From positions 186,001 to 250,000 of the IMG/VR virus record IMGVR_UViG_3300035665_000001: a DNA stretch of 64,000 bases. One strand, written 5' to 3'. Below, one piece after another: positions 13,074 to 63,924 of this stretch. Numbering within the stretch: position 1 is the first letter of the stretch; each line of letters begins with the position of its first letter. The notes below the pieces were generated by a model, which saw nothing but the letters and a program-made list of their open reading frames with translations, did no database searches and was not told the DNA's origin. Position numbers and translations under genes: made by a program.

Positions 13074-14204
13074 ATGAAAACTAAAAATTATCATTATGTT
13101 TACAAAATTACAAATCATAATCCAGTAGATTCACGTAAGTTCTATATTGGTGTTAGAACAACGAAAGGGCGATTACCAGAAGATGATATTAATTATATGG
13201 GTTCATCAGATACATTAACCGCTGCAATTAAAACCCAAGGAAAAAAATATTTTTCTAAAGAAATTTTGTCAGTATGGCAATCAAAGGATGATGCATATGC
13301 TGAAGAAATAAGATTACATGAATTGTATGATGTTTGTAGAAACATGGAATATTATAATAATGCTAACCAAACGAGCACTAAATTTTGTACGGATGGTAGG
13401 GTTGTAGTGTTTGATAAGAACACGGGCAAAACAAAAAGTGTAACAAAAGAAGAATTTCAAACTGTTACTGATTATGTTGGTGTTAAAACAGGTATGGTTT
13501 CCGTAATGGATACTACCGATGGAGTATTTAAATCAGTGTCAAAGGAGGAATTTGAAAAATCCGAACATTATATTCATCCTGCAACTGGTAAAGTAACCGT
13601 GATTGATACCACCGATGGTTTAGTTAAACATGTGAACTGTACAGAATATAGAAGTTGTGAAAATTATGTTTCTATCGCTACTGGAACTGTAACGTGTTAT
13701 GATATTAGAGATGGAAAAAACAAACAAGTTTCTAAAGATGAATTTGATAATGCTGATAATTTAATCAGTTGTAATGCTGGAAAAGTTACTGTGCTTGATA
13801 CTCGTGATGGAATTAAGAAATCGGTAACTAAGGTAGAGTTTGATATTACCTCTCATTATGTCGGTGTTAAATCTGGTAGAGTTACCGCTTTCGATATTCG
13901 GGACAAAAAGTTTAAAACTGTTACGATTGAAGAATTTGCAAATGATGATAATTATGTGAAAGGTAATTCCAAAAAAGTTGTTATTTTTGATAATAATGAT
14001 AATGTGGTTTTTGTATCTTATGGCAATTTTGAAACTTTTTGTAAAAAACATAAATTGCCGTGCTTTGTATTTAGAATGTCATATCGTAATAATGGCAGTC
14101 CAATCTATCAAAATTTAAGAGGCGTAACAAAAGCAAAGATATTTAAAAATGGAAACTACAAATATATCGGTTGGTATGCTAAAATTAGTGATGATACAAC
14201 TTAA
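13074..14204 (+). CDS. GIY-YIG (Seg-like) homing endonuclease with six 32-aa repeats
   Basis: YHYVYKITN..KFYIGVR..YMGSS..KEIL..EIRLH..YYN; then six units of G(K/R)V(T/S)xxDxxDGxxKxVxxxEF. Confidence 0.85.
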   Translation: MKTKNYHYVYKITNHNPVDSRKFYIGVRTTKGRLPEDDINYMGSSDTLTAAIKTQGKKYFSKEILSVWQSKDDAYAEEIRLHELYDVCRNMEYYNNANQTSTKFCTDGRVVVFDKNTGKTKSVTKEEFQTVTDYVGVKTGMVSVMDTTDGVFKSVSKEEFEKSEHYIHPATGKVTVIDTTDGLVKHVNCTEYRSCENYVSIATGTVTCYDIRDGKNKQVSKDEFDNADNLISCNAGKVTVLDTRDGIKKSVTKVEFDITSHYVGVKSGRVTAFDIRDKKFKTVTIEEFANDDNYVKGNSKKVVIFDNNDNVVFVSYGNFETFCKKHKLPCFVFRMSYRNNGSPIYQNLRGVTKAKIFKNGNYKYIGWYAKISDDTT

Positions 14205-15511
14205 AAAACAGAAGGGAGAATATCCCATTTATCCATATCGGAGTCAGGATCATAATCATCATCCTCATCATATTCTACAACAGATGAACCATTTTGTGCC
14301 ATTCTGGCGTAGTATTCTCTTTCCTGTTTCTTTGCTTCTTCAATTAATTTTAGTTCTTCCTGTTTTTGTTGTTCTAATCGCAAAGTTTCTTTTTCTACTC
14401 GTTCTTTATATAATTTCGCAGGATCAATTTCTTCTTTATTGGTGTTGATAATTTTTTCATCTTTTTTAGTAATCAACATATTATCAACAGAAAAATCACC
14501 CATCGCGTAGTTTGCGAATTCATTAAGAAGATAATATACCATTAAGAATGAACAGGTGACTCTATCGTCAGTATAACCAGATTTAGCACAATACGCCCCA
14601 CCAGCTGTTCTAATAAATCCATATAATTCCTCAATAAATCTTCCATCTCGAATTACCATTTTGTCGTACTCAACCAAATTTTTAAATTGTAATGCTAGTT
14701 TATTTTTAAGAGTTGGGGTTATGTGTAATCCAGGTTTACCCTTAATATCATAGAAGATAGGCATTTCAAGATTTTCGATTGCCTTTTCAGTTTGGGTTAA
14801 AATTTGAGCTAATCCCTCACCAATACCATTACGTTCAAAGATAATAAGTGCTTCATTTGGTTCATACTGCCATCTTGTTCGCATGTAATCCTGTAACCAT
14901 AATAATTTTTCAAATAGTACTGATGCATCAGCAAATTCATCGACAAAAGAGGCGATTTCATAAACCTTATGTGGTGCTATTTCCCAAATTTGTAAACAAC
15001 TACTATTATTACCACCTGCGGATGGGTCAATAGTTACCACTAACAAACCATCATCGTGCTCCAATTTATCTTTAAAAATATTAAAACCATTAACATCCTC
15101 CTCAAGAATTTCAGGTATTTGGTAAAAATCTAAAATATCTGTAGAAATTAATGAAAGTTCGAAAGTGATGAAAGCACAATTATGGGTTTTTAATGAATTA
15201 GCCAATAAAAAACTGTGCTCATCGTTTTCAACCTCAATAATATCAAACATTTTGGTAAAATTGTGAATTTCATTGATTTCCTCCACCTCACACAAACCCG
15301 TTTCGGTTTTTAAATCAAACCCCACTAATAAATCTTTTGCTTTTATTAACAGGTTATTTGATGTCCAAAATAAATGTTCACCAGAACATTTTACCGAAAT
15401 ATCATTGCTTAATTTTATTTCAAAAAACGAATTATGTTCAGATGATGCTATTCCTGCAAACGCTTTGTAACCTTCAGGAGTTTTTATTTTAAATCTATTA
15501 TTTTTTACCAT
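14201..15511 (-). CDS. terL: Large terminase C-terminal fragment: split-intein C-half (111 aa) plus RNase H-fold nuclease domain
   Basis: IKTPEGYKAFAGI..CSGEHLF..FDIIEVENDEHSFLLANSLKTHN|CAF, then gp17-like TIDPSAGG, IFERNGIGEGL, GYTDDRV; ends in a coiled-coil/acidic tail. Confidence 0.88.
   Translation of the reverse strand: MVKNNRFKIKTPEGYKAFAGIASSEHNSFFEIKLSNDISVKCSGEHLFWTSNNLLIKAKDLLVGFDLKTETGLCEVEEINEIHNFTKMFDIIEVENDEHSFLLANSLKTHNCAFITFELSLISTDILDFYQIPEILEEDVNGFNIFKDKLEHDDGLLVVTIDPSAGGNNSSCLQIWEIAPHKVYEIASFVDEFADASVLFEKLLWLQDYMRTRWQYEPNEALIIFERNGIGEGLAQILTQTEKAIENLEMPIFYDIKGKPGLHITPTLKNKLALQFKNLVEYDKMVIRDGRFIEELYGFIRTAGGAYCAKSGYTDDRVTCSFLMVYYLLNEFANYAMGDFSVDNMLITKKDEKIINTNKEEIDPAKLYKERVEKETLRLEQQKQEELKLIEEAKKQEREYYARMAQNGSSVVEYDEDDDYDPDSDMDKWDILPSVF
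15179..15511 (-). other. Atypically split intein, C-half (TerL intein 2)
   Basis: Contains block B (SGEH), block F and terminal HN followed by +1 Cys; lacks block A. Confidence 0.85.
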
Positions 15512-44009: not shown

Positions 44010-44333
44010 ATGAAAGATATTAATGAGTGGGAGATTTTAACTCCAGAGGGATGGCGTGATTTTTCGGGAATTATCCAATTAGATAAGAAAGTTATCACTA
44101 TTGAATTTGATAATGGTAAACAGTTAACAGGTAGTGAAACACATCGAATTTTTTCTAAAATTGGAATACAAGAATTTAACACTTTAATGGTTGGTGATGA
44201 AATCAAAACCAATGATGGTTGGACTGTGGTAACTAAAATTTCAGATGTAAAACAAACTCAGAAAGTATATGATTTGGTAGAAGTAAAATCAGCTAACCAT
44301 CAATATTATACCAATGGTTTTGTTTCAAAAAAT
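44010..44333 (+). other. Atypically split intein C-half (TerL intein 1); partner N-half not in window
   Basis: Blocks B (SETH), F and G ending SKN, with +1 Cys. Confidence 0.82.
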
Positions 44334-44798
44334 TGTGATGAGATTGCGTTTATTCCCAACAGAATTCAGGAAGAATTTATGTCTGGCACAACACCGGCTC
44401 TTTCTGCTACAAAAGGAAAAATGTTAATTACCTCAACGCCCAATGGTTCGAGAGATTTATTTGCGAAACTTTGGTTTGGATCCGGTATGACATGGGATAA
44501 AAAACAATATACATACGTCAGAAAAAATGAACCAAAAAACCTTTTTAGTCCATTATTTGTACCTTTTTGGATTGACCCAGAAAAAAACACTGATGAATGG
44601 ATTCACAGAGAAAAGATGACTCTCGATAGCCCAATAGCATGGAAAATAGAGTTTGAATGTATGTATCCAGATACGTTGATTGATGTATATGATGAAAAAA
44701 CTAAAAATTATCAAACAATAACTATAGAAGATATGTATCGAATGATACTTCGAGATGAAATTGAGAATAAAGTTATTATTGATGAATCTGATAATTAG
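44010..44798 (+). CDS. terL: Large terminase middle fragment: IntC(108 aa) - ATPase Walker B/motif C region - IntN(46 aa)
   Basis: ILTPEGWRDFSGI..SETH..YDL..YTNGFVSKN|CDEIAFIP..LITSTPNG..IEFE|CMYPDTLIDV..ITIEDMY. Confidence 0.9.
   Translation: MKDINEWEILTPEGWRDFSGIIQLDKKVITIEFDNGKQLTGSETHRIFSKIGIQEFNTLMVGDEIKTNDGWTVVTKISDVKQTQKVYDLVEVKSANHQYYTNGFVSKNCDEIAFIPNRIQEEFMSGTTPALSATKGKMLITSTPNGSRDLFAKLWFGSGMTWDKKQYTYVRKNEPKNLFSPLFVPFWIDPEKNTDEWIHREKMTLDSPIAWKIEFECMYPDTLIDVYDEKTKNYQTITIEDMYRMILRDEIENKVIIDESDN
44658..44798 (+). other. Atypically split intein N-half (TerL intein 2), 46 aa
   Basis: CMYPDTLIDV block A plus ITIEDMY helix, then stop. Confidence 0.85.
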
Positions 44799-44806
44799 AG
44801 AAATAT

Positions 44807-45970
44807 ATGTTGTTGAAAGAAAAAATGATATTGATAGAATTCATAATATTCGCAAAAAACAATATTAATAATATCGCTGAAAATCCAACAGATACGTTCA
44901 TCGATAAAGTGGTTGAAATTTACCATCGCAAGAAAAATGTTGAATTTAAAAACCCACTAGCAAATGAATTTCCTAGAGCACCTAATACACTTGAATATTG
45001 GTTACACCGTGGATGGAATGAAAAAGAAGCAGAGAAAAAAAGGTGTGAAAAAATTCTCGCTAGTAGTTGCTCATTACAAGCTTTAATTGCTAAACATGGT
45101 GAAGAAAAAGGGTATCATTTGTTCACCGAAATCAATACTAAAAAATCAAATACTTTGGATGGTTTCATTAGAAGACACGGTGATGAAATAGGAAAAAAAT
45201 TGTACGCTGCATATACCCTAAAAATGTCCACACAAAATACTTTAGTTGGGATGATTGAAACTTATGGTGAAATTGAGGGTAATGAAAGATATAACACTAT
45301 GATTTCTGGTAAGATACATAACTTAGAAAGTGTTATTAAGCGATATGGGGAAGAAGAAGGTAAAAAACGATACACTGCTAGTAATTTAAAAAGAAGTAAA
45401 TCACACAGTTATGTGGGGTTCGTTGAAAGGTTTGGTTCTTACGCTGACCAAAAATGGGAGGAATTATCAAAAAATCGATCATATAGAACAACAGTAGATT
45501 ATTATATTGAAAAATATGGGGATGATTTAGGGAGAAAAAAACATACCGATTGGTTTAAATCATCGATTGGTGGTGATTTTAGTCAAAGTTTTTCAAAAAC
45601 ATCTAAAATGTTATTTGAAAGTTTAAAAAATAATGAATTTGCTCAATTTGGTTGTAATGAAGCTTTAATTGAATTAACTACAGATGAACAATCAGTTTTA
45701 AATAGGAAATTTATTCGCCCCGATTTTTTACTTGATAACAAAATAATTGAATTTTACGGAACCTATTGGCATTGTCATGAATCCATGTTTGCTGCAGATC
45801 AGATACATCCACAGTTTAATAAGACAGCAACAGATATACGAAACTACGATTGTAAGAAAAATGAGGTGTTGAAATTGAAAGGGTTTGATGTTTTGGTTAT
45901 TTGGGAACATAATTATTATGCTAACAAAGAAGGTATTATTGCACAGTGTAATGACTTCTTAAATCAATAA
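44807..45970 (+). CDS. Free-standing homing endonuclease with C-terminal Vsr-like PD-(D/E)xK domain
   Basis: Repeated K(H/Y)GxExGxxxY units; RPDF..IIEFYGTYWH..GFDVLVIWE; paralog of 62689-63924. Confidence 0.75.
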   Translation: MLLKEKMILIEFIIFAKNNINNIAENPTDTFIDKVVEIYHRKKNVEFKNPLANEFPRAPNTLEYWLHRGWNEKEAEKKRCEKILASSCSLQALIAKHGEEKGYHLFTEINTKKSNTLDGFIRRHGDEIGKKLYAAYTLKMSTQNTLVGMIETYGEIEGNERYNTMISGKIHNLESVIKRYGEEEGKKRYTASNLKRSKSHSYVGFVERFGSYADQKWEELSKNRSYRTTVDYYIEKYGDDLGRKKHTDWFKSSIGGDFSQSFSKTSKMLFESLKNNEFAQFGCNEALIELTTDEQSVLNRKFIRPDFLLDNKIIEFYGTYWHCHESMFAADQIHPQFNKTATDIRNYDCKKNEVLKLKGFDVLVIWEHNYYANKEGIIAQCNDFLNQ

Positions 45971-46592: not shown

Positions 46593-48056
46593 TTGAGAAC
46601 CATATTAAAATTTATATTGATTACACTACTTTTGTTATTACCCGTAGTATTGATAACAAATCTAGGTGTGATACAACCTTCATACTATCATATTATTATA
46701 AATCAAATTTACAATACGGTAATTATAGTTTTGTCTGTATGTTTTATTACTACTATTGTTGGTGTAACACTATCATGGGTATTTGCAATTTACGATTTCC
46801 CCTTTAAAAATAGTTTGGAAAAAATAATTATTTTAGGTATGGTTTTTCCAAGTTATGTATTGGCATTTTTTTATTCCGAAATGTTTAATATCTTTGGTTC
46901 AATTGCGTTAATTGGTACTTTAGTTGTTACCACATTACCTTATGTTTTTATGATGGTAACTACCAGTATCCGAATACAATCCCAACGTATGGTTGAATCG
47001 GCATTGATGTTTGGTAAAGATAAGAGATGGATAAAAGGTAAATTGATATTGCCATTAATTTTTCCAACAATCGTTTTATCAACATTATTGGTTATGGGAG
47101 ATACATTTTCTGAATTTGGTGCCACTTATTTTTATGGTGTTAATACTGTGATGACTGGAATTTACGAAATTTGGTTTGGTTTGAATGAATCTATACAAGG
47201 GATACGATTGTCAGCATGGTTGTTAACAGTTGTTATAATGGTATATTTGGTTATTAATGTTTTGAAAAAAGTATTTGTTGATAAATCCGATAATTTTATA
47301 AACAGTCGTGAATTTAAAGGTATAGTGGTCGAGAATATAGGTATTAAAGGTTGGTTTATAACTTTTTTAATATTCTTACTAACCATTATTACTTTTTTTA
47401 TACCTTGTTTCGTGTTATTAACATGGGTAATTGAAAGTTATAACAAAACCGATTGGTTTAAAGTTTTAGCAACCACAATTAATTCGGGAATCTTAGCATC
47501 AATAATATCTTTAAGTGTATTATGTGTTACCACTATAATTTTATATTTGTTTAAGCATCGGCTAGTGGCAATAATGACAATTTGTAATACGTTGTATTCA
47601 ATACCAGGTATTGTTTTGGCAATAACGACAATCTTTATATCTACACATCTTCCATTGAGTTTTACACCTGTTATATTTTTGTATGTTTTAATAGTCAAGT
47701 ATATTGCAATTGGTGTTGATAATATTAGTGCTCCAATTCAAAAAATTCATAAACAACATTATCACTCCTCAAAATTGTTAGGTCATAGTTCCTTATGGTA
47801 TATTAAAAATGTTCAGTTTCCATTAGGTTTTCAAATATATTTGGTTGCAGGATTATTAGTTTGGATCGATGTCATTCGGGAATTAGTAATAGGGTTGACT
47901 ATTAGACCACAGGGATTAAATTTATTAAGTATCGAAATTTTTAGATTTATGGATTTAGAACAATTATCTATGAGTGGTCCTTGGATTTTATCTATGGTTA
48001 TTTTAACAATGGTTCCAATTTATTTTATAAATATGGTTTTAAAGCAAAATAGGTAA
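46593..48056 (+). CDS. fbpB: Fe3+ ABC transporter permease (FbpB/FutB-like)
   Basis: Multi-TM with two duplicated halves; ESALMFG..LILPLIFP EAA-like motif, SEFGAT. Confidence 0.85.
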   Translation: MRTILKFILITLLLLLPVVLITNLGVIQPSYYHIIINQIYNTVIIVLSVCFITTIVGVTLSWVFAIYDFPFKNSLEKIIILGMVFPSYVLAFFYSEMFNIFGSIALIGTLVVTTLPYVFMMVTTSIRIQSQRMVESALMFGKDKRWIKGKLILPLIFPTIVLSTLLVMGDTFSEFGATYFYGVNTVMTGIYEIWFGLNESIQGIRLSAWLLTVVIMVYLVINVLKKVFVDKSDNFINSREFKGIVVENIGIKGWFITFLIFLLTIITFFIPCFVLLTWVIESYNKTDWFKVLATTINSGILASIISLSVLCVTTIILYLFKHRLVAIMTICNTLYSIPGIVLAITTIFISTHLPLSFTPVIFLYVLIVKYIAIGVDNISAPIQKIHKQHYHSSKLLGHSSLWYIKNVQFPLGFQIYLVAGLLVWIDVIRELVIGLTIRPQGLNLLSIEIFRFMDLEQLSMSGPWILSMVILTMVPIYFINMVLKQNR

Positions 48057-48062
48057 ATCTGT

Positions 48063-48968
48063 ATGTTTGATGTAAAAAATCTAAACCTAATAATAGATGA
48101 TGTTGATATTCTACACAATATAAACTTTGATATTCATAATGGTGAAATACTTTCTATTATTGGACCGAGTGGTTGTGGTAAATCATCTATTTTAAAATCT
48201 ATAGCTGGAATTTATAAACATACTACAGGGGCATTAATATTAGATGGTGAAAATATCGCGGACAAACCTATTAATCTCAGAAATGTCAACTTAGTTTTTC
48301 AAGATTTCCCTTTGTTTCCACATATGACTACTATACAAAATATGCTTGTTGCCTGTGATAATAACCGAGTTATTGATATAGTCCTCGATGAAATGGGTAT
48401 CAAACATTTAAAATTTAAATATCCTCATGAAATGAGTGGTGGTGAACAACAACGAGTTGCATTAGCTCGTGCGATAGTGTATAAACCCAAATTATTATTA
48501 TTGGACGAACCATTTTCAAATATTGATGTGCTAACCACAAAAGTATTGAGACATAAAGTATTTAATTTATTGAAGCAATTTAATATTACTACTCTAATGG
48601 TTACACATGATTTGGATGATGTTTTTGAAATGAGTGAAAGATGTATCGTTATGAAAAATTCGAGTATTGTACAGTTTGATACTTTTGATAATTTATACAA
48701 TTATCCAGTTGACGAATATGTTTCAACTTTATTCGGTAATGTTGTTTCTTATGCAGGTAAAAATTATAGACCAGAAAATATATTAATTATTGCAGATTAT
48801 TCACCTAATTCCGTTAAAACTGTAATTAAAAATGTAAAATTTAAATCACATTATAATGAAATAACTTTAGAATTGGATAATAAACAAGATATCATTGTTT
48901 TTGATTATTATCGTAAAAAGTATAAAATTAATGAGATTATGTATTTGAATTTTAATAACCCATTATAG
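48063..48968 (+). CDS. fbpC: Fe3+ ABC transporter ATPase (FbpC/FutC-like)
   Basis: GPSGCGKS Walker A, VFQDFPLFPH Q-loop, MSGGEQQR signature, LLLDEPF Walker B, VTHD. Confidence 0.9.
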   Translation: MFDVKNLNLIIDDVDILHNINFDIHNGEILSIIGPSGCGKSSILKSIAGIYKHTTGALILDGENIADKPINLRNVNLVFQDFPLFPHMTTIQNMLVACDNNRVIDIVLDEMGIKHLKFKYPHEMSGGEQQRVALARAIVYKPKLLLLDEPFSNIDVLTTKVLRHKVFNLLKQFNITTLMVTHDLDDVFEMSERCIVMKNSSIVQFDTFDNLYNYPVDEYVSTLFGNVVSYAGKNYRPENILIIADYSPNSVKTVIKNVKFKSHYNEITLELDNKQDIIVFDYYRKKYKINEIMYLNFNNPL

Positions 48969-52048: not shown

Positions 52049-53608
52049 ATGACTTATACTGAAAATGATCTAATTTATTATAAAAACCACCCAGAACATA
52101 TAACGTCGGAACTTGATCACGATTTATTATTAGCATTAATATCTTATAACGTTGAAAATATGTCGCGTATTAAGAAACAAACCACCGAATTTATAAGTGC
52201 AGCTTATGATATAAGTCATTCAGTTTTTAAATATATTGATTTCAGTGAAGTATCTATTCACTTTTTAGAAATTGCAATATCAAATAACCCTACATTTATT
52301 CAATACCTATATTCACCAAGCCCAGAAATAATTAAATTAGCATTATCGAAAGACATCAACGTGTTTATGTATGTTGAGAAATACTTGGATGCTAGTATGT
52401 TTGAATGGTTGTTATCACAAAATGGATTGATGTTAGAATATGTCCCGGCAGAAATACAAACTGAAAAAATGGTATTGATAGCATTAAAAGAAAATGTACA
52501 GTCGTATAAATTTGCACATATAAAAACAAAAGAAACAGATATTTGTTTAATTAATATCGACCAAACAAAAATAAGTTGGATAACTGGTTTTTGGACAGAA
52601 TTAGTTAAACCGATAATTGAATATAATCCTTTATACATCGCCAAATTTTTCGATACCCCTGAAATATTAACCAATGATATTGTAAAAATGGCATTAAGAA
52701 AAAACCCAAAAATTTATAAAATTCTACCAAATCCAAACCCAGAATTAAAATTGTATGCCGCTGAATTGGATATTTCTTTACTTGAACACATGAAATTTGA
52801 CAGAACACTGATTGAACATATTGTTTCTAAAAACGGGTTAGCTCTTAAATATGTAAAGAAAAAAGATTTGTATATAATAAAAATAGCAATTTTACAAAAT
52901 GTATTTTCACTCGATTATGTTGTAAATGTTGATAGACCTAGACAATTTCTTATTGATTATGCGTTTAAGCATGATGGTGCTGCATTAAAATATATGACGT
53001 CACCTACATACAAACAATGTTTAGACGCAGTTACTAGAAATCCATTGGCAATTCAATTTGTTCCAGCGTTACATAACACTGAAGAGATACAATTGGTGGC
53101 GTTGCATGGTGGGAAATATGAAGTGGTACAGTATATTTCTACACCTGCATCAAATGTGGTTATTTTGGCAATGATTGAATGTGATCCAAGTTATATATTT
53201 AAAATTCCAAATCCAACAAAAGAAATATATAAACTTGCGTTTAAACATGATGGTCGATTGATGATGCAATTTCCAAATTGGAATAATAAATTTGATCCTG
53301 ATGTTATTTCTGTTGCACTTAGTCAAGATGGTGAAATATTTGAATATGTTGAACGCAAAACTAAAACTTACGCGACTGTCGCAATTAGTCAATATCCACC
53401 AGCGATACAATGGGTTATATTCCAGGATTTAGAATTAGCTACTTTAGCGGTAAATTTAGATCCAAGAACGATATTTTTCGTCGATAAAAGTATATTAGAT
53501 AAAAAATTATTTGAAACTGCACTTACATTAGATCCAGACTTTTTTGAACATACAGCTGGTGAGATGACATGGGATGAATGGTTGAAAATAATTACACCAA
53601 TACAATAA
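52049..53608 (+). CDS. DUF4116-like tandem repeat protein
   Basis: Many roughly 24-aa units such as LSQNGLMLEYVP, VSKNGLALKYVK, FKHDGAALKYMT, VTRNPLAIQFVP. Confidence 0.75.
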   Translation: MTYTENDLIYYKNHPEHITSELDHDLLLALISYNVENMSRIKKQTTEFISAAYDISHSVFKYIDFSEVSIHFLEIAISNNPTFIQYLYSPSPEIIKLALSKDINVFMYVEKYLDASMFEWLLSQNGLMLEYVPAEIQTEKMVLIALKENVQSYKFAHIKTKETDICLINIDQTKISWITGFWTELVKPIIEYNPLYIAKFFDTPEILTNDIVKMALRKNPKIYKILPNPNPELKLYAAELDISLLEHMKFDRTLIEHIVSKNGLALKYVKKKDLYIIKIAILQNVFSLDYVVNVDRPRQFLIDYAFKHDGAALKYMTSPTYKQCLDAVTRNPLAIQFVPALHNTEEIQLVALHGGKYEVVQYISTPASNVVILAMIECDPSYIFKIPNPTKEIYKLAFKHDGRLMMQFPNWNNKFDPDVISVALSQDGEIFEYVERKTKTYATVAISQYPPAIQWVIFQDLELATLAVNLDPRTIFFVDKSILDKKLFETALTLDPDFFEHTAGEMTWDEWLKIITPIQ

Positions 53609-54485: not shown

Positions 54486-54952
54486 CAATATTTCTTGATA
54501 AAATCAAAGATTTGTTAACTGTACAGAAAAACATTATAATTTCTGATATTACCCCAGTTATACATGTGGCCCATATAACTAACAATGGGTATCTACATTT
54601 GGGAATTGAATTTCATGAGGAGTTACAGGTAAGAATGTTATATCATGGTTTTAAACCAAATAATGTGTGGCAGTTATCACTTACGGGGTTATTTGACGAA
54701 CATGAAAACATAATCACTTATATATCGGAACATTATTTAACCATACAGGTAACAAATAATCGGTGGTATCAATTAGATTTATTCACCGATAATGAGGTAA
54801 GTGATTACAGTTTAACTATCGAAAGTATTGAATTCTCGAAAGTAGTTAAGTCACTATTACAGTTATCAGAAGAAAAAACAATCCATTTAAGAGTTAGAAT
54901 TGGTGAGTCAAATTGGTCAGAAATAGTGAAATTTGATGTTTCAAAAATTTAG
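54476..54952 (+). CDS. Hypothetical protein
   Basis: About 155-aa ORF. Confidence 0.5.
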   Translation: MGMTIFLDKIKDLLTVQKNIIISDITPVIHVAHITNNGYLHLGIEFHEELQVRMLYHGFKPNNVWQLSLTGLFDEHENIITYISEHYLTIQVTNNRWYQLDLFTDNEVSDYSLTIESIEFSKVVKSLLQLSEEKTIHLRVRIGESNWSEIVKFDVSKI

Positions 54953-55176
54953 GAACCAAATTATCTACCTAAGAGGAGATTAAACTCAATGAATCATAAT
55001 CGTGTTTTGATGGTGTATGAACAATCTAAGAAAAAATTACTACCTCACAATATCACTAAAATATGGGAATATATTTCTCATCACATTCCAACTAAAAAAA
55101 TACCAGTTAAAACTTTTTTATCACCAAAAAATATTGTAAAATTGTTATCATCAACAATAAAATAGGATATTAAATT

Positions 55177-55470
55177 ATGGCTAAGAAAGACACAACCACA
55201 TCTACATCTAAAAGTGCCACACCTAAAAAAAATGATTTATTCACCAAAATGAGAAAAAACATTCTTAAAAAGAATGAAGATGCAATGTTAGATTTAACGG
55301 AACCTACTGTTTGGGCATCATCTGGAAATTATGTATTAAATCATATTTTGAGTGGTAGATTTCATAGAGGTTATCCTTCTGGAAGAATTGTACAAATTTT
55401 TGGTGATTCTGGGTGTTTATTGCCACATGAAAAAATAAAAGTGTATGAATTCAAATCAAATATTGTATGA
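55177..55470 (+). CDS. recA: RecA/UvsX fragment 1: N-terminus to mid-Walker A plus 18-aa split-intein N-half
   Basis: SSGNYVLNHILSG..GYPSGRIVQIFGDSG|CLLPHEKIKVYEFKSNIV*; IntN 55414-55467. Confidence 0.85.
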   Translation: MAKKDTTTSTSKSATPKKNDLFTKMRKNILKKNEDAMLDLTEPTVWASSGNYVLNHILSGRFHRGYPSGRIVQIFGDSGCLLPHEKIKVYEFKSNIV

Positions 55471-55533
55471 AATACTTGTTAAATTATTATAAAACTAACA
55501 ATCAAAAAATAAAAAACTTTATTGGAGAACAAA

Positions 55534-56856
55534 ATGATTGAAAACAATGTTAGAGAATTAACTGATAAAGAAAAATTACTGGAATTAAAAGAATGGTATT
55601 CCTCTGATGAATTATCAAAATCCCTTGATGTTACTGAAGAAATGCTTGGTAATTTTTTAAATGATAAAAGTTCTTTTACATTAACAAATTCTGAGAAATT
55701 GAACGATTTTTTTAATAACCATGTTCATGAAAATTCAAAATTTGAAATGATTAAAAATGTTTATGGTTTGTGGGAAACTGATGAAAAACAATTTATGGTT
55801 GATACTCCTGATGGGTTTCAATTTGTTAGTGAATTTATTCATAAAGATTCAAGAAGTTGCTTTGACTTAAGAACCGATAATTTTCATATTGAATGTTCGG
55901 GTGACCATTTGATTGAAACTGATAAAGGTTGGGTGAAAACTGAAGATATTGTAGTTGGTTCAAAAGTGTTAACCCGTGTTGGTTTTGAGGAAGTTAAATC
56001 AAATGCACAACTTAGTGATAGTGATGTTTACGATATGACTGTTGAACATGATAATCATCGATATTGGGGTGGTGCCGGTATTTCATCACATAATTCTGGT
56101 AAATCTTTTCTTATGGCTAAAGCGATTGTTGAGGCTCAAAAAGAAGGTTATATGGTGGCAGTATTAGATTCGGAACAAGCGGTTTCACAGGATTATTTGA
56201 AAAAAATTGGGGTTGATTTAGACCCATCAATGTTAATGACTGTGCAGGTACAAACAGTTGAACAAACTCAAGATATGCTTCTAGAAGTTTTGGAAGGTGT
56301 TAAGGAAGAACAAGAAGCTTTAGGAAATACCAAAGAACTAAAATTATTACTGATTGTTGATTCCATTGGTATGCTTTCATCTGGAAAAGCACTAGCAAAT
56401 GCTGAAGCTGGACATCACGCGGCTGATATGGGTACTAAAGCAAAAGCATTAACCAATATGTTCAACCAAATTGTACAAAAAGTTGGTATTACTGAAACTG
56501 TTTGTTTAGTAACTAATCATGGAGCATTAGAAGTTGGAGTTATGTTCCCACAACTCAAACCAAAAGGTGGACAATGTTTAGTAGCAGGTACAAAAGTACA
56601 AACTGATAAAGGTTATAAAAATATTGAAGAAATCCAAGTTGGTGATATGGTGAGAACACACTTGAACCAAATTAAACCTGTTGAAAAATTATTTAGTTTC
56701 GATAATCTTGATATTCTTAATTTTGAATTAGAAACAGGACAAAACATTAAAATGTCGAAGGATCATAAAATGTTAGTTTTGCGAAATGGTGAAAAATTGT
56801 GGTTGGAAGCTCAATTTATAACTACTTATGATTCATTGTTAGCACTTGATGTTTAA
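55534..56856 (+). CDS. recA: RecA/UvsX fragment 2: IntC(187 aa) - ATPase core - IntN(93 aa)
   Basis: GGAG RBS; ..CSGDHL..YDMTV..ISSHN|SGKS..LDSE..IVDSIG..VTNH..KGGQ|CLVAGTKV..SKDHK. Confidence 0.9.
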   Translation: MIENNVRELTDKEKLLELKEWYSSDELSKSLDVTEEMLGNFLNDKSSFTLTNSEKLNDFFNNHVHENSKFEMIKNVYGLWETDEKQFMVDTPDGFQFVSEFIHKDSRSCFDLRTDNFHIECSGDHLIETDKGWVKTEDIVVGSKVLTRVGFEEVKSNAQLSDSDVYDMTVEHDNHRYWGGAGISSHNSGKSFLMAKAIVEAQKEGYMVAVLDSEQAVSQDYLKKIGVDLDPSMLMTVQVQTVEQTQDMLLEVLEGVKEEQEALGNTKELKLLLIVDSIGMLSSGKALANAEAGHHAADMGTKAKALTNMFNQIVQKVGITETVCLVTNHGALEVGVMFPQLKPKGGQCLVAGTKVQTDKGYKNIEEIQVGDMVRTHLNQIKPVEKLFSFDNLDILNFELETGQNIKMSKDHKMLVLRNGEKLWLEAQFITTYDSLLALDV

Positions 56857-56870
56857 TAATTAAATGGATT

Positions 56871-56901
56871 GGGGTGGATATTGAAATCCACCCCATTTTT
56901 T
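56871..56901 (+). terminator. Intrinsic terminator after RecA fragment 2
   Basis: GGGGTGGA / TCCACCCC stem followed by a T run. Confidence 0.75.
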
Positions 56902-57397
56902 TATTGTACAGCCCCATATCTAGAACCAGTAACCAACCATGTAATTGAACTGTTTCCACTTATTGATGCACCACCTGAACCACCACCTGAACCCATATCG
57001 TTGTATGATGTTTTACCACCGCCACCACCACAGATTGCACCTGCTTGACCTGTAAATGCTGAACCGCCTGTACCTGCTGTCCTACCATATGAGTTAGAAC
57101 CATTAGTTCCGTATGTCGCACCTATCCAGTTTTCAGTACCACTTCCCCATGGTGAAGCACCACCAGCACCACCTTGAGTTTGTGTACCACTGTTACCATT
57201 ACCACCAGCGGCATAACCAAAACTTGTTTCCGTTCCACCTGATGCAGGTGAATTATTCGAATCGGACTGTCTAGCAGTTGTTTCTGCAGCTAAATTAGTA
57301 GTTAAAGTTGCATCTGCAGCTTGTCTCGCAGTTACCTCATTTGCAATATTGGTAGCAACAACACTACCGATTTTTTTTTAAATATTGAATCGACCAT
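56901..57397 (-). pseudogene. Frameshifted Gly-rich tail-fibre-like ORF (about 165 aa if shifted -1 at A9)
   Basis: AGGAG RBS, then MVDSIFKKK / IGSVVATNIANEVTARQAADATLTTNLAAETTARQ..GGAGGAS..CGGGGG..GSGGGSGG..AVQ*; T9 run at 57371-57379; GC-richer than flanks; absent from the ORF track. Confidence 0.6.
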
Positions 57398-57477
57398 TTG
57401 TATCTCCTATTTAATAACTATTAAAAATCGGTATGATTTTTTGAATGAATCCACTTGTGTGGAATATGTTATATTTA

Positions 57478-57789
57478 TCAAATAGTATCATTTTGCGGAA
57501 CTAAATTTCGTTCTAAAACACCCCATTTATGTAATCTTCTTAGTTCTGCAGAATGATCACGGCAGCAGGTTTTATTAAATCCAGCACCAATTGACACAAA
57601 TTTTGTTACTTTATTACATTTTGGATGTTGACATATATTGCTGTCTGGATGATAAAATAAATAAATTTTTGCATCTGTCGGTGTACCTTCAAAAAGTTTG
57701 GAATCCTCACATTCATTTAACCATAACCCAACGTTATGTTTGAATCCTTTTTCTTTGTTTTTTATAAAATATGTTTCAAAATTATTCAT
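57478..57789 (-). CDS. Truncated homing-endonuclease-like N-terminal fragment (Cys motif)
   Basis: CQHPKCNKVTKFVSIGAGFNKTCC resembles the Zn-binding N-domains of phage free-standing endonucleases; no nuclease domain. Confidence 0.4.
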   Translation of the reverse strand: MNNFETYFIKNKEKGFKHNVGLWLNECEDSKLFEGTPTDAKIYLFYHPDSNICQHPKCNKVTKFVSIGAGFNKTCCRDHSAELRRLHKWGVLERNLVPQNDTI

Positions 57790-57945
57790 TTGTTTTTTTC
57801 TCCTGAAAATAATATAGTATTATACATTAAGTGACAATTCATCTTATTATCGAGTGATAGGCAAAAAATAAATTTTTAAGATTTTACTTTTATCTCATTT
57901 GATTGTAAAATAATAGTTAATAACCATTCACTAAAGGAGTATTTT

Positions 57946-58614
57946 ATGAACTCAAATGAGTTTTTAGTCGATTCAAATTATAAACCAGTTAAGATTAAAT
58001 CTATTACCCCTGTGGCAATAGAAAAAACTTATGATTTTCAAGTTGCTGACGATCATAGTTTTTTATTAGAAAATAATATAATTTCAAGTAATTGTATGGA
58101 ATTTGTACCATCAATTTCTTTGCGTGTAACTAAAGGTAAGATTAAACCCACTGATTTGGCAGAATTAGAATATTTGTATGATGGTGGAATACCAAAACAT
58201 TTGGGTGCTTTAGGGATTGTATCGAGAATTGAATTGTATAAATCCCGATTTACCCGACCTTTTAGAAAGGTACAATTGATGATTCCATACGATTTTGGAT
58301 TACCTGAATATGCGGGATTATTTGATTATCTCAAAGATAATGGTATAATTATTGAAAATGGTAGAAAAGGTTATTATAATTGTACTGAGGTACAATTTGA
58401 AAAAGATTTTACTAGAAAAGATTTTATTAAAGGTGGTTGGGCTGATTTAATTATGGAACATTTATTAGCTGAGGAAACCAAAGGTAGAATTTATGATTTT
58501 ATTATGAAATCTAGTGATGATGATGCCCGAGAAAAAGAACAAGGATTAGATTCAATTGATGACTCTTACATTGAAGATGATGATATGGATGAATCGGAAT
58601 TTAATGTTGAATAA
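57946..58614 (+). CDS. recA: RecA/UvsX fragment 3: IntC(49 aa) plus C-terminal domain with acidic tail
   Basis: AAGGAG RBS; VKIKSI..TYDFQVADDHSFLLENNIISSN|CMEFVPSISL..KSRFTRPFR. Confidence 0.88.
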   Translation: MNSNEFLVDSNYKPVKIKSITPVAIEKTYDFQVADDHSFLLENNIISSNCMEFVPSISLRVTKGKIKPTDLAELEYLYDGGIPKHLGALGIVSRIELYKSRFTRPFRKVQLMIPYDFGLPEYAGLFDYLKDNGIIIENGRKGYYNCTEVQFEKDFTRKDFIKGGWADLIMEHLLAEETKGRIYDFIMKSSDDDAREKEQGLDSIDDSYIEDDDMDESEFNVE

Positions 58615-58632
58615 CCATAGTGAGAAAAAAAT

Positions 58633-59079
58633 ATGTTTAGAGTAGTTTCAATTAATGGTACTATGAATGATATTTTTAATGAAGGGAGTTTTCTCGTTGA
58701 AGAAGCTTTCTTCTTCACTATTAAATCAACTTCATATTACAATGTTTATAATAAAAGAGAAGAACTTATTGGTGTGATTCCTGATGGATACAACTTATTC
58801 TTTAAAGTTGAGGAACATGATAATTTTGAAGAAATTGATATGTTTAATGTGCTCAGATTATTTGAAATGGGTGAAGAATTTCAAATTGTTGGAACTATTA
58901 GTAATAGTCAACAGGTTAAATTGATTTCAAGTAATATTATTAAAGAATTTAGATTGGTCGATGATGATGTTATTAATATTCCATTTACTAATAAGGCATT
59001 TGATTCTGAGGGAATCATCGTATTCAAAAATATGGTATCATTGGCTGAATCTATTAAATTAGAAAATGATTCACATTGA
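58633..59079 (+). CDS. Hypothetical protein
   Basis: 148-aa ORF. Confidence 0.6.
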   Translation: MFRVVSINGTMNDIFNEGSFLVEEAFFFTIKSTSYYNVYNKREELIGVIPDGYNLFFKVEEHDNFEEIDMFNVLRLFEMGEEFQIVGTISNSQQVKLISSNIIKEFRLVDDDVINIPFTNKAFDSEGIIVFKNMVSLAESIKLENDSH

Positions 59080-60952: not shown

Positions 60953-62692
60953 ATGGCTAACTATATTGATTTTGCTTATTTAGGTAAAACCGCAGACCCA
61001 ACAGGCATTAGAGTGTGGGAACAAAATTATGAAACAGGTAAAATTGATGAGAAAGATTATGACATAAAAGATTATTTGTATTTTTACATTGATGCTACTG
61101 ACGAGAACAAAATTGAAAAAAATTTAATTTCTCAAAGGGGAACAAAAGTTAAAAAAGTGGTTGCAGATAACTTTAAAGTTCTTAGAAATGGTGAATCTGC
61201 GAAAATGTTTCATAGTTTAAATCTTAATACTTATGAGTCTGATATTGAACCCTTACATAAGGTAATGTTGGATAATTATGGAAAAGATCATCAAAAAGCC
61301 ACTAATTGGAATTTAGCTTTATATGATATTGAAACGGATGTTCGTATGGAGGATTCTTTTATGGGTATGCGAGCAAATGCAGATCGAGAGATAAACGCTA
61401 TTTCTGTGTGGTATTCGAAACCAAATAAATTTTATAATTTTACCGTTGTACCACCTATGCTGCGAGATGAATGGGATTTTGATACTATTGAAACTCGTGG
61501 TAATTTTGAGATTATCTATTTTGATAATGAAGAAGAAATGCTGGAAACATTTTTCACAGTTACAAAAAAACATGAAACTATGGCATTAGGTGCGTGGAAT
61601 GGGGATTTTTTCGATACCAAGTATATTTTTGATAGATGCAAAAATATTTGGAAAGAAAAAGGTGCTGCAGAACGAATGGGGCGGTTTACAAAAGTTAAAA
61701 AAACTAAAATCATGTTGGGTGAAAAAGAAGAAATTTTGGTTAGACCAATTGGTATGATTTGGTACGATTGTATGGAGGCTTATAAGAAAAATGGTCCAGA
61801 ATTAGAATCGTTTGCTCTAAATGCTGTAGTTGAACATGAAAATTTGGGAAGTAAGTTAGATTTTGAAGGGTCGTTTGAAACTTTATATCACGGAAGTAGA
61901 AAAGATAGAGATAGATTTTTAGAATTAACACCAAAGAAAAAAAGAAAAAATTTGATTAAAAAATCTAATGAGATTGGAAACTCGGTTATTTCTGATTTGG
62001 GGTTATATAGCGAATGTAAAGATATGTTGAAGATGGATACAAGCATCGAAGAATATGAATTGGAAACTCGAATTCAAATAAGTATTACTGATAGATTGGA
62101 AGAGCTTCTCAAAATGAATGAAACCAAAGAAGATTTAGGTGATATGTTTGAGGATTTTGAACGATTTGTAGTGTATAAAAAGTTAACAGATACTTATAGA
62201 CTTTTTGTTGATTATTCTAATCAGGATAGTCAACTTTTACATGATTTAGAAATGAAGTTGGAAAAATTTAAAACTCTTATGATGTTGGCACAGTATAATG
62301 TATCATCGTTTTATGATGTATTTTCTACACTCAAACAGGTTGAACAGGGTATTACTAATTTTGCTCATTTATATAATAATAAAGTTGTTATTGATCGAGA
62401 GTATGATAAGAAAAAACAGATTTATAATAAATTTGTTGATAAAGATTTGTTACAAATCAGAATCGACAATGATACTCGTATACAACCAAATGATAATCGG
62501 AAGATAAGAGAAATAAAAACTCTTTTGGAGCAAAAAAAAATACCTGGAGCCAACGTGCTTCAACCATACGTAGGATTGATTTCTTACAATGAGGCGGAAA
62601 CACCACAGTTAGCAAGAGAATTCAAATCATTAAAAAATGAATTGCGAGAAATAGATGAACAGTTAAAACAATTTGAAATGGATGAAAATTAG
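60953..62692 (+). CDS. polB: Family B DNA polymerase N-terminal (3'-5' exonuclease) subunit of a split gene
   Basis: ExoI YDIET, ExoII WNGDFFD, ExoIII YSNQD; ends PGANVLQPYVG plus a coiled coil, before polymerase motif A. Confidence 0.85.
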   Translation: MANYIDFAYLGKTADPTGIRVWEQNYETGKIDEKDYDIKDYLYFYIDATDENKIEKNLISQRGTKVKKVVADNFKVLRNGESAKMFHSLNLNTYESDIEPLHKVMLDNYGKDHQKATNWNLALYDIETDVRMEDSFMGMRANADREINAISVWYSKPNKFYNFTVVPPMLRDEWDFDTIETRGNFEIIYFDNEEEMLETFFTVTKKHETMALGAWNGDFFDTKYIFDRCKNIWKEKGAAERMGRFTKVKKTKIMLGEKEEILVRPIGMIWYDCMEAYKKNGPELESFALNAVVEHENLGSKLDFEGSFETLYHGSRKDRDRFLELTPKKKRKNLIKKSNEIGNSVISDLGLYSECKDMLKMDTSIEEYELETRIQISITDRLEELLKMNETKEDLGDMFEDFERFVVYKKLTDTYRLFVDYSNQDSQLLHDLEMKLEKFKTLMMLAQYNVSSFYDVFSTLKQVEQGITNFAHLYNNKVVIDREYDKKKQIYNKFVDKDLLQIRIDNDTRIQPNDNRKIREIKTLLEQKKIPGANVLQPYVGLISYNEAETPQLAREFKSLKNELREIDEQLKQFEMDEN

Positions 62693-63924
62693 ATTCTCTC
62701 TTTAATTAGATTCACACATTTTTCTACCATCTGTTCTATATTTTCTTTTGTTTCATAATCCCAAATTTCGATTACAGTGAACCCTTTTTTTTCAGCAGAT
62801 GCTAATTTTAATCTGTCCAATTCAAATTTTTCATCTGCTGATTTTCCTGTCCAAGGACATCTCCATCGTTCCCATTGCTCAGTTGTTAATTTTTCTTTTG
62901 ATGGGTGTACATGACTTCCATTATATTCAAAAATTAATTTTAGTGGTAAAATAGTATAATCGAATGAATGCAGTTTTGTACCTTCTTCAATTTTGTATTC
63001 ACAAGAGTTTTCAACGCCGTAAAAAATATCAGAAAAATCAATACCGTGTGCAAGTGAAAAATCAGTTAAATGTTTAAAAAATGCCAATGATTCTTTGGAA
63101 GCAATATAACCTGCATTGCTGTTTTTGTATTTTTTCCATCTGGTCAACCCTTCTTCATATCCATGAACTCTGATGAAATTCTCTTTAGTATTTGCAGATC
63201 GTTTACAAAATAGGTTGTATTTCTTTTCACCTAATTCTGTACCATACCGGGAAATGAAATTCTCCTTACTTAATTTAGATTTTTCTTTAAATTCTACCCA
63301 TTTTTGTTTTCCCAATTCTTCTCCATGCCGAAGTTTAAAATTTTCTTCGGATAGCATGCACTTTTTTTTCCATGATTTGTATTTCTTTTCACCCAATTCA
63401 ACACCATGACGTTTTTGCATTTTTTCTAAAGTTTGTCCACCTCTTGTAGAAATTGCCTTGGTAAACAATTTCAACCCTTCATCATTTCCATATTTCTTAG
63501 TGAATTTTTCTAAGGTAAGCACTTTTTTTGAATTCATTTCAGTGTATCTTCTAGATCCTTCTTCCAATCCATATTTTTCTACTTGTCCCTCTAACGTGTT
63601 ACCAATACCTTTTTTTCTGTTATTATCAAGATATTTTTTTAAACCTATCTCGTCACCATACTTTAACCTAAAATAATGTTCAGTGTTAGATTTAGTCTTT
63701 AGAAATTTTTTAAATCGGACTACTAAATTTTCTTCTAGGGTAGTGGTAGATATTAGCATACAATGAAACGAATATCTTTGTTCTTGTGTTAAATTTCCTC
63801 CCAATACTAAGTTGACGTCTTTTAATCTTTCAATCCCAATGTTTTCAAAAGTAATCCCATTCTCCTTAAAAAACTTATTGGTGAACGCTCTTTTCGTTTT
63901 TAAATTTAATTCTGAATATTTCAT
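62689..63924 (-). CDS. Free-standing homing endonuclease with Vsr-like C-terminal domain
   Basis: Many (K/R)YGxExGxxxY repeats; SFDY..IFEYNGSHVHP..GFTVIEIWD; paralog of 44807-45970. Confidence 0.75.
   Translation of the reverse strand: MKYSELNLKTKRAFTNKFFKENGITFENIGIERLKDVNLVLGGNLTQEQRYSFHCMLISTTTLEENLVVRFKKFLKTKSNTEHYFRLKYGDEIGLKKYLDNNRKKGIGNTLEGQVEKYGLEEGSRRYTEMNSKKVLTLEKFTKKYGNDEGLKLFTKAISTRGGQTLEKMQKRHGVELGEKKYKSWKKKCMLSEENFKLRHGEELGKQKWVEFKEKSKLSKENFISRYGTELGEKKYNLFCKRSANTKENFIRVHGYEEGLTRWKKYKNSNAGYIASKESLAFFKHLTDFSLAHGIDFSDIFYGVENSCEYKIEEGTKLHSFDYTILPLKLIFEYNGSHVHPSKEKLTTEQWERWRCPWTGKSADEKFELDRLKLASAEKKGFTVIEIWDYETKENIEQMVEKCVNLIKERI

Follow-up and report, generated by a model that had tools for sequence, protein, structure and literature searches.

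We analysed a 64,000-nucleotide stretch of viral DNA (bases 186001–250000 of a 306,333-bp IMG/VR viral record; hereafter the window) and found that a gene for a UvsX/RecA-type recombinase is carried in it as three separate open reading frames (ORFs), whose products bear the matching halves of two different split inteins at the two sites of interruption. We consider it likely that two independent trans-splicing reactions of class 1 join the three polypeptides into a single UvsX; this estimate applies to the whole chain of steps, and the anatomy of the locus taken alone is more certain. The record represents a freshwater (lake-water) jumbo phage, and the window is GC-poor (~29% GC). Many lake-water metagenomes contained DNA near-identical to the window. 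A search of GenBank phages for such near-identical DNA gave no match, and a scan of IMG/VR with the second recombinase piece returned only the window's own contig.

The three ORFs lie on the plus strand, all in frame 1, at 55177–55470 (piece 1, 97 residues), 55534–56856 (piece 2, 440 residues) and 57946–58614 (piece 3, 222 residues). Piece 1 consists of a 79-residue UvsX/RecA N-extein (55177–55413), which ends with the first half of the Walker A motif (...QIFGDSG), followed by an 18-residue N-terminal intein fragment (IntN1; CLLPHEKIKVYEFKSNIV) and a TGA stop codon (55414–55470). Piece 2 starts with the 187-residue C-terminal fragment of the same intein (IntC1; 55534–56094), in which a helical, helix-turn-helix (HTH)-like subdomain precedes the core of the HINT (Hedgehog/intein) fold and which ends in ...GISSHN. 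It continues with a middle extein of 160 residues (56095–56574) that opens with the second Walker A half (SGKSFLMAK...), includes the RecA ATPase core and ends in ...KPKGGQ, and it closes with a 93-residue N-terminal fragment of the second intein (IntN2; CLVAGTKV...SKDH...) and a TAA stop codon (56575–56856). Piece 3 is composed of the 49-residue IntC2 (57946–58092; ...TYDFQVADDHSFLLENNIISSN), closing with ...NIISSN, and a C-extein of 173 residues (58093–58614), which begins at the +1 Cys (CMEFVPSISLRVTKG...) and has an acidic tail at its end. Pieces 2 and 3 have their own ribosome-binding sites, as the original prediction made from the DNA letters had stated: GGAG (55524–55527) lies 6 nt upstream of the ATG at 55534, and AAGGAG (57934–57939) lies 6 nt upstream of the ATG of piece 3. 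The numbers stated in the original prediction all agreed with the sequence. The ORF list placed the start of piece 2 at TTG 55522; ATG 55534 is the more likely start because of the GGAG in front of it and because a database copy of the protein (P0001) begins there.

Joined in order, the exteins constitute a RecA/UvsX protein, with a RecA ATPase core, Walker motifs and significant profile matches. Pfam RecA (PF00154) was recognised on piece 2 with 43.8 bits (cut-off, 27), and the PHROG 97 UvsX-like profile was covered at positions 1–84, 83–239 and 363–494 by pieces 1, 2 and 3, respectively, the N-extein of piece 1 matching it with an E-value of 6.5e-10. An intact, intein-less homologue of 389 residues (P0044) aligned to the three pieces in the same order through its residues 3–66, 66–226 and 228–382, with 70–83% identity over the exteins (83% for the middle extein). 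The exteins contain no internal stops, and in the alignment to the intein-less homologue, both junctions were exact, with not a single residue missing or repeated. The interruptions fall within the P-loop (GDSG/SGKS, the slash marking the junction) and at KGGQ/C, where the +1 Cys of intein 2 replaces the Ser of intein-less proteins (GGQ-S-x-EF). Walker A (GDSG plus SGKS) is rebuilt only once pieces 1 and 2 are joined, and the predicted spliced product has 79 + 160 + 173 = 412 residues. Three ORFs with their own starts thus tile UvsX collinearly, in agreement with the claim that the recombinase is encoded in three separately translated pieces, and the motifs and the homologue alignment bear out the further claim that both junctions are needed to rebuild Walker A and the GGQ-x-EF-PS core.

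Intein 1, at the P-loop, has the features of a class-1 intein: a HINT fold, Cys1, the block B His, a terminal Asn and a +1 Ser. It is cut after the second beta-strand, so that Cys1 resides on piece 1 and block B (SGDH), block F and the HN/S junction reside on piece 2. His-125, Asp-167, His-186 and Asn-187 of IntC1 were invariant among 23 homologues. The best solved relative of IntC1 was VidaL (6vgv; phmmer, E = 1.3e-14), and an AlphaFold2 model of IntC1 with a predicted local distance difference test score of 91.9 had VidaL as its top Foldseek match (root-mean-square deviation of 1.5 Å over 119 columns), many other inteins being matched as well. With two separate ORFs, a short IntN and the rest of the HINT fold in IntC, the split is of the atypical VidaL type (S1). 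The split position was identical in three related loci (L002, L003 and L008), and in the related proteins P0007, P0012, P0013 and P0022, the IntN1 peptide was fused in cis to the remainder of the intein. The ratio of nonsynonymous to synonymous substitution rates (dN/dS) of IntN1 was 0.03–0.06 against L002 and L003.

IntC1 also contains a conserved helical subdomain of ~75 residues (piece 2 residues ~10–83; 55561–55782), of which the contiguous intein versions P0007, P0013, P0022 and P0068 have a shorter form or none. When this part was modelled alone, its top PDB fold matches were mostly HTH proteins of the XRE type at non-significant E-values of 0.1–1, and the Foldseek PDB matches included CylR2, Aca11, HigA and C.AhdI. 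In addition, phmmer matched HipB at E = 1.3, and leads from Atlas pointed toward HTH_3. These matches are only suggestive of an XRE/Cro-type HTH.

Intein 2, at the KGGQ site, is a canonically split class-1 intein: the cut falls between blocks B and F, where endonucleases are usually inserted, and yields fragments of 93 and 49 residues that carry Cys1 (CLVAGTKV...), SKDH, DDHSF and the SSN/C junction (SSN/S in some relatives); membership of this class does not depend on which residue precedes the terminal Asn. IntN2 matched Pfam Hint_2 (E = 1.1e-9), and its best PDB sequence match was the gp41-1 intein (6qaz, E = 0.002). IntC2 aligned with its counterparts in L002, L003, L004 and L006, and dN/dS was 0.17–0.30 for IntN2 and 0.12–0.30 for IntC2. 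At the +1 position (58093–58095), the window and L004 have Cys, and L002, L003 and L006 have Ser, as do intein-less alleles. A sequence comparison of intein 1 with intein 2 revealed no meaningful similarity, so cross-reaction between them is unlikely. The proposal made from the DNA letters alone, that the locus holds an atypical and a conventional split intein that differ from each other, was supported by the matches to VidaL and gp41-1, the confident IntC1 model, purifying selection and the contiguous forms in relatives.

Relatives of the recombinase were gathered by a protein search with piece 2 (family identity, 50–80%), and their intein states were counted in clusters of 90% protein identity. 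No intein was present in 26 clusters, nine had split intein 2 only, and split intein 1 only was seen in five close clusters and in more distant ones. A contiguous intein 1 was combined with a split intein 2 in six clusters (e.g. P0007, P0013 and P0022); both inteins were contiguous in P0068, which is more distant and outside the set used for the tree described below; and the middle segment of the three-piece arrangement (IntC1–core–IntN2) was found in at least eight clusters. Complete three-piece loci with DNA were L002 and L003, both with the same split points as the window. Compared with these two loci, the four intein fragments had dN/dS values of 0.03–0.38 with dS of 0.65–2.5, a pattern indicative of purifying selection acting on the splicing parts. 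Between three-piece lineages, the intein parts were 57–88% identical, with synonymous sites near saturation.

On a tree of middle exteins (P0001–P0061), the intein states required 26 changes, equal to the mean for shuffled labels, so that no clustering of states was seen relative to shuffling. Near-identical exteins also differed in their intein state (P0016/P0043, P0002/P0008 and P0004/P0007). This random-like scatter suggests that inteins and splits are frequently gained and lost in this phage population, in keeping with homing and recombination; gene conversion among the exteins could blur the topology of the tree. One relative, L008 (1–10067), carries pieces 1 and 2 with a full ORF of 408 residues between them. 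Piece 3 was not found within 5 kb downstream of piece 2 in L008, and another part of that genome may encode it.

The two gaps between the pieces differ among these loci. In the window, gap 1 is a 63-nt spacer (55471–55533) without an endonuclease gene, which holds two in-frame stops in addition to the TGA of piece 1 and the GGAG in front of piece 2. The same gap is occupied by a same-strand ORF of 406–408 residues in the loci of L008, P0003 and P0008, by a 45-residue remnant of this ORF in L002, and by an antisense tail-fibre-like gene in L003. The gap-1 ORF of the relatives may be Vsr/DUF559-like, the sole family evidence for the L008 copy being a sub-threshold match to DUF559 (17.2 bits; cut-off, 20.6). 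Gap 2 of the window spans 1,089 nt with many in-frame stops and antisense gene remnants. Directly 3' of piece 2, we located the terminator that had been placed at 56871: an intrinsic-terminator-like element (56870–56902, plus strand), consisting of a hairpin of 10 pairs, six of them G–C (56870–56895), and a T-run, with a sequence identical in independent assemblies. The original prediction also listed two antisense ORFs in this gap, of which one stood. The minus-strand ORF at 57478–57789 (103 residues) is a proper ORF and the N-terminal remnant of a DUF7487 endonuclease-like gene, with 54% identity to residues 1–91 of a 410-residue DUF7487 protein of L002 (E = 2e-34). The other, a glycine-rich minus-strand frame at 56901–57377 (...TARQAADATLTTNLAAETTARQ...GGAGG...), runs for 158 codons without a stop, yet it has neither a start codon nor homologues; with no Pfam or PHROG match either, it was rejected as a real gene and is probably a gene fragment. 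Its 5' end holds an A9 run (57372–57380), and the sequence with this run was identical in the two independent assemblies described below; further upstream, a different frame contains an ATG (MVDSIFKKK). A small gene frameshifted at the A9 run, which would join the MVDSIFKKK start to this frame, is possible but unsupported.

A full-length antisense DUF7487 protein of 410–412 residues (E = 1e-76) was present in gap 2 of L002, L003, L004 and L005. It showed a weak TnsA-like nuclease match and no match to solved structures at the sequence level, and its family is found together with Vsr, DUF559, HNH and NUMOD domains. A same-strand homing-endonuclease gene between the intein halves, as in a 'fractured gene' in the strict sense, was absent from the window, where gap 1 is geneless and gap 2 contains an antisense stub. 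Since fuller genes occupy these gaps in relatives, the window looks like a derived, endonuclease-less state.

From these observations, we propose that two independent mobile inteins fractured the UvsX gene into three translation units and that each intein was then itself split. The splits would most likely have arisen from free-standing endonuclease-like genes that entered contiguous inteins, the gene in gap 1 maybe being Vsr/DUF559-like and that in gap 2 of the DUF7487 type; in this phage, the former would since have been deleted and the latter have decayed to a stub. The three polypeptides would be made separately, from their own ribosome-binding sites and with the terminator behind piece 2. 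IntN1 would dock into IntC1 and IntN2 onto IntC2, and in each pair, formation of the Cys1 thioester would be followed by transfer to the +1 Ser or Cys and by cyclisation of the terminal Asn. The predicted outcome is a single 412-residue recombinase with an intact Walker A, and this protein would presumably be needed by the phage. The two reactions would be independent, with no fixed order. The original prediction had assumed ordered splicing, a claim that we could not sustain: the inteins are unrelated in sequence, nothing in the locus sets an order, and in engineered systems that pair an atypical with a canonical split intein, the reactions run one after the other, in either sequence, or in concert (PMC11185735).

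We considered whether the breaks might be unreal at the protein level, through assembly or sequencing error, stop-codon recoding, or splicing of a group I or II intron, the first and last of these having been named in the original prediction as scenarios that would undo it. The three pieces do share a reading frame, which has a chance of 1 in 9, but several findings contradict this explanation and leave it highly improbable. Two independent DNA assemblies, run X6 from 2016 (covering 55201–55944, 56678–56911 and 57599–58144) and run X3 from 2024 (covering 56004–56994 and 57775–58293), were identical over the breaks, with zero differences at every stop and start covered, and assembly error was rejected on this ground. 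Readthrough or recoding of gap 1 was rejected because three in-frame stops of two kinds (TGA, TAA and TAA) occur inside 17 codons, and gap 2 is long and rich in stops and antisense remnants. No Rfam family matched at 54900–58900 (E ≤ 1), no recognisable group I or II intron RNA was found between the coding pieces, and no joints linking the pieces were seen in DNA or RNA contigs of independent metagenomes. Whole genes occupy the gaps in relatives, and matching intein halves flank each break.

Other observations weigh against the trans-splicing reading itself. Splicing is deduced from sequence-level evidence rather than from protein or junction peptides. Intein 2 has Ser instead of His before its terminal Asn, which is less common among active inteins, and this Ser is kept in all split relatives. 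The RNA contigs comprise three short metatranscriptome contigs on piece 2 (55868–56456) and one on the end of piece 3 (58433–58624), which give a mere hint of expression since they may be carried-over DNA, and promoter-like sites in the region were no more frequent than in shuffled sequence. The window covers 64 kb of the 306-kb genome, and a second, intact recombinase elsewhere is possible. Partial coverage and the ambiguous origin of the RNA contigs would also suit a decaying pseudogene, broken by mobile-element insertions and stops, whose pieces are no longer made or joined while another recombinase or that of the host is used; the gap-2 endonuclease-like gene, reduced to the 103-residue stub and a start-less fragment, is clearly decaying. 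The recombinase pieces themselves show no such decay: the splice-site residues are all intact, each piece retains a start codon and a Shine–Dalgarno sequence, the exteins remain close to intact homologues and free of internal stops, and the three-piece layout persists in diverged lineages under the low dN/dS described above, making a pseudogene unlikely. We regard as less probable still a non-covalent recombinase of three chains, in which the intein halves are mere dimerisation domains and no peptide bond is formed. Functional genes-in-pieces, split by endonuclease genes without inteins, exist in T4-like phages, and a DNA polymerase fragment in the window (60953–62692) ends without a visible intein. 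However, both junctions of the recombinase have kept the nucleophiles, the block B His and the terminal Asn, which would be needless without chemistry, and a 187-residue IntC left unspliced within the P-loop would probably keep ATP from binding. Among characterised inteins, the one closest to intein 1, VidaL, splices fast, with a half-time of ~1 min (PMC13014065). Covalent joining by two trans-splicing reactions thus remains the reading that we favour.

VidaL-type atypical splits, gp41-1-type canonical splits, fractured genes (PMC2677866) and engineered tandem trans-splicing are all known already, and the locus can be described as a doubly 'fractured gene'. VidaL (6vgv/6vgw), which groups with PolB16 OarG, AceL-TerL and GOS-TerL, is a naturally atypically split intein with an IntN of 16 residues (PMC13014065). 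Intein 1 shares with VidaL, its homologue, the S1 split after beta-strand 2, a similarly short IntN and a presumed dependence on Cys1, but it differs in the extra HTH-like subdomain at the N-terminus of IntC1, which is absent from VidaL, and in residing in a protein that also hosts another, unrelated split intein. Thiel et al. reportedly listed atypical split inteins of UvsX genes in 2014. Inteins of mycobacterial RecA, such as that of Mtu RecA, resemble those of the window in their RecA-family host protein and HINT fold, and their splicing-domain structures were among the Foldseek matches; unlike the window inteins, they are contiguous, and with 15–19% identity in the Foldseek alignments, they show no specific relationship to them.

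Intein 2 resembles gp41-1 and other canonical split inteins in being cut at the endonuclease-insertion site into an IntN of ~90 and an IntC of ~50 residues. As in the known fractured genes, the host gene functions in phage DNA metabolism, and relatives have a free-standing endonuclease-like gene between the intein halves. The published set comprises 26 'fractured gene' loci, for each of which a break into two parts was described (Dassa et al. 2009, PMC2677866); their intervening genes are GIY-YIG or Vsr-like and lie on the same strand, and the gp41-7 locus, like the window, is without its endonuclease gene (PMC2677866). In contrast, the intervening gene here is of the DUF7487 type, lies on the opposite strand and is a stub in the window, and the UvsX gene is fractured twice. 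The arrangement is also similar to that of engineered tandem trans-splicing, in which a middle segment bears one intein's IntC and an orthogonal intein's IntN at its two ends (PMC11185735; PMC12707363), with the atypical split intein placed N-terminally and the canonical one C-terminally; the version in the window differs in being natural, phage-encoded and conserved across lineages, its orthogonality being presumed. A full-text literature search found no description of a natural gene needing two different split inteins, which is not proof of absence, as key subscription papers were outside its reach.

For the intein field, the locus offers a natural, pre-matched pair of split inteins in one protein, a VidaL relative with an ultra-short IntN and a gp41-1-like intein, which are presumably orthogonal and whose layout matches the design built for tandem trans-splicing and 'protein transposition'. 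The series of homologues with absent, contiguous and split inteins can reveal what lets an intein tolerate splitting. With respect to phage biology, a gene of an essential type can survive two successive fracturing events while the presumed causal endonuclease-like genes come and go; intein states are scattered among near-identical alleles, and the terminase gene appears fractured in the same genome. Annotation pipelines will miss such recombinases or label them as fragments. A more speculative idea, which we hold to be unlikely, is that the conserved HTH-like domain on IntC1 could subject recombinase assembly to a condition, such as the presence of DNA or the moment at which the separate transcripts of the pieces are made. 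Keeping several essential genes (UvsX, the large terminase TerL and perhaps DNA polymerase) divided into pieces linked by inteins would in that case be a means of regulation or protection for the phage, and double trans-splicing would be more than tolerated parasitism.

Elsewhere in the window, the ORF at 44010–44798 (plus strand) encodes an IntC of ~108 residues (best PDB match, CatC 6dsl_B; E = 4e-7) followed by the middle part of TerL (phrog_36964, E = 2e-10), and it ends with a 46-residue tail (CMYPDTLIDVYD...) resembling a short IntN. It is followed by an ORF of 387 residues (44807–45970, plus strand) that is 27% identical to the gap-1 ORF of L008 and has weak matches to endonucleases and restriction endonucleases. 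On the minus strand, the ORF at 14201–15511 encodes an IntC of ~111 residues (CatC, E = 4e-4), likewise of the TerL 'Cat' intein family, and the terminase's C-terminal part; it adjoins a GIY-YIG SegE-like gene (13074–14204, plus strand). The N-terminal piece of TerL was not found within the 64-kb window. Because each of these two ORFs opens with a TerL 'Cat'-family IntC and goes on into a part of the terminase, the large terminase appears to be encoded in at least three intein-linked pieces, ~30 kb apart on opposite strands.

The ORF at 60953–62692 (plus strand, 579 residues) matched profiles of phage DNA polymerases in their N-terminal part only (positions 37–377 of the 856 in phrog_262). It ends without an intein motif, and the DNA polymerase gene may be in pieces without an intein; the window ends before any C-terminal part. 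Directly after the 579-residue ORF lies a minus-strand ORF of 411 residues (62689–63924), a paralogue of the L008 gap-1 ORF (phrog_22677). An ABC-transporter permease-like gene (46593–48056, plus strand; BPD_transp_1, E = 8e-15) stands beside an ABC ATPase gene (48063–48968, plus strand; ABC_tran, E = 2e-35), and the pair probably represents auxiliary host-like genes. Upstream of the recombinase locus, the plus-strand gene at 52049–53608 encodes a DUF4116-repeat protein of 519 residues, which is syntenic in L004 and L006.

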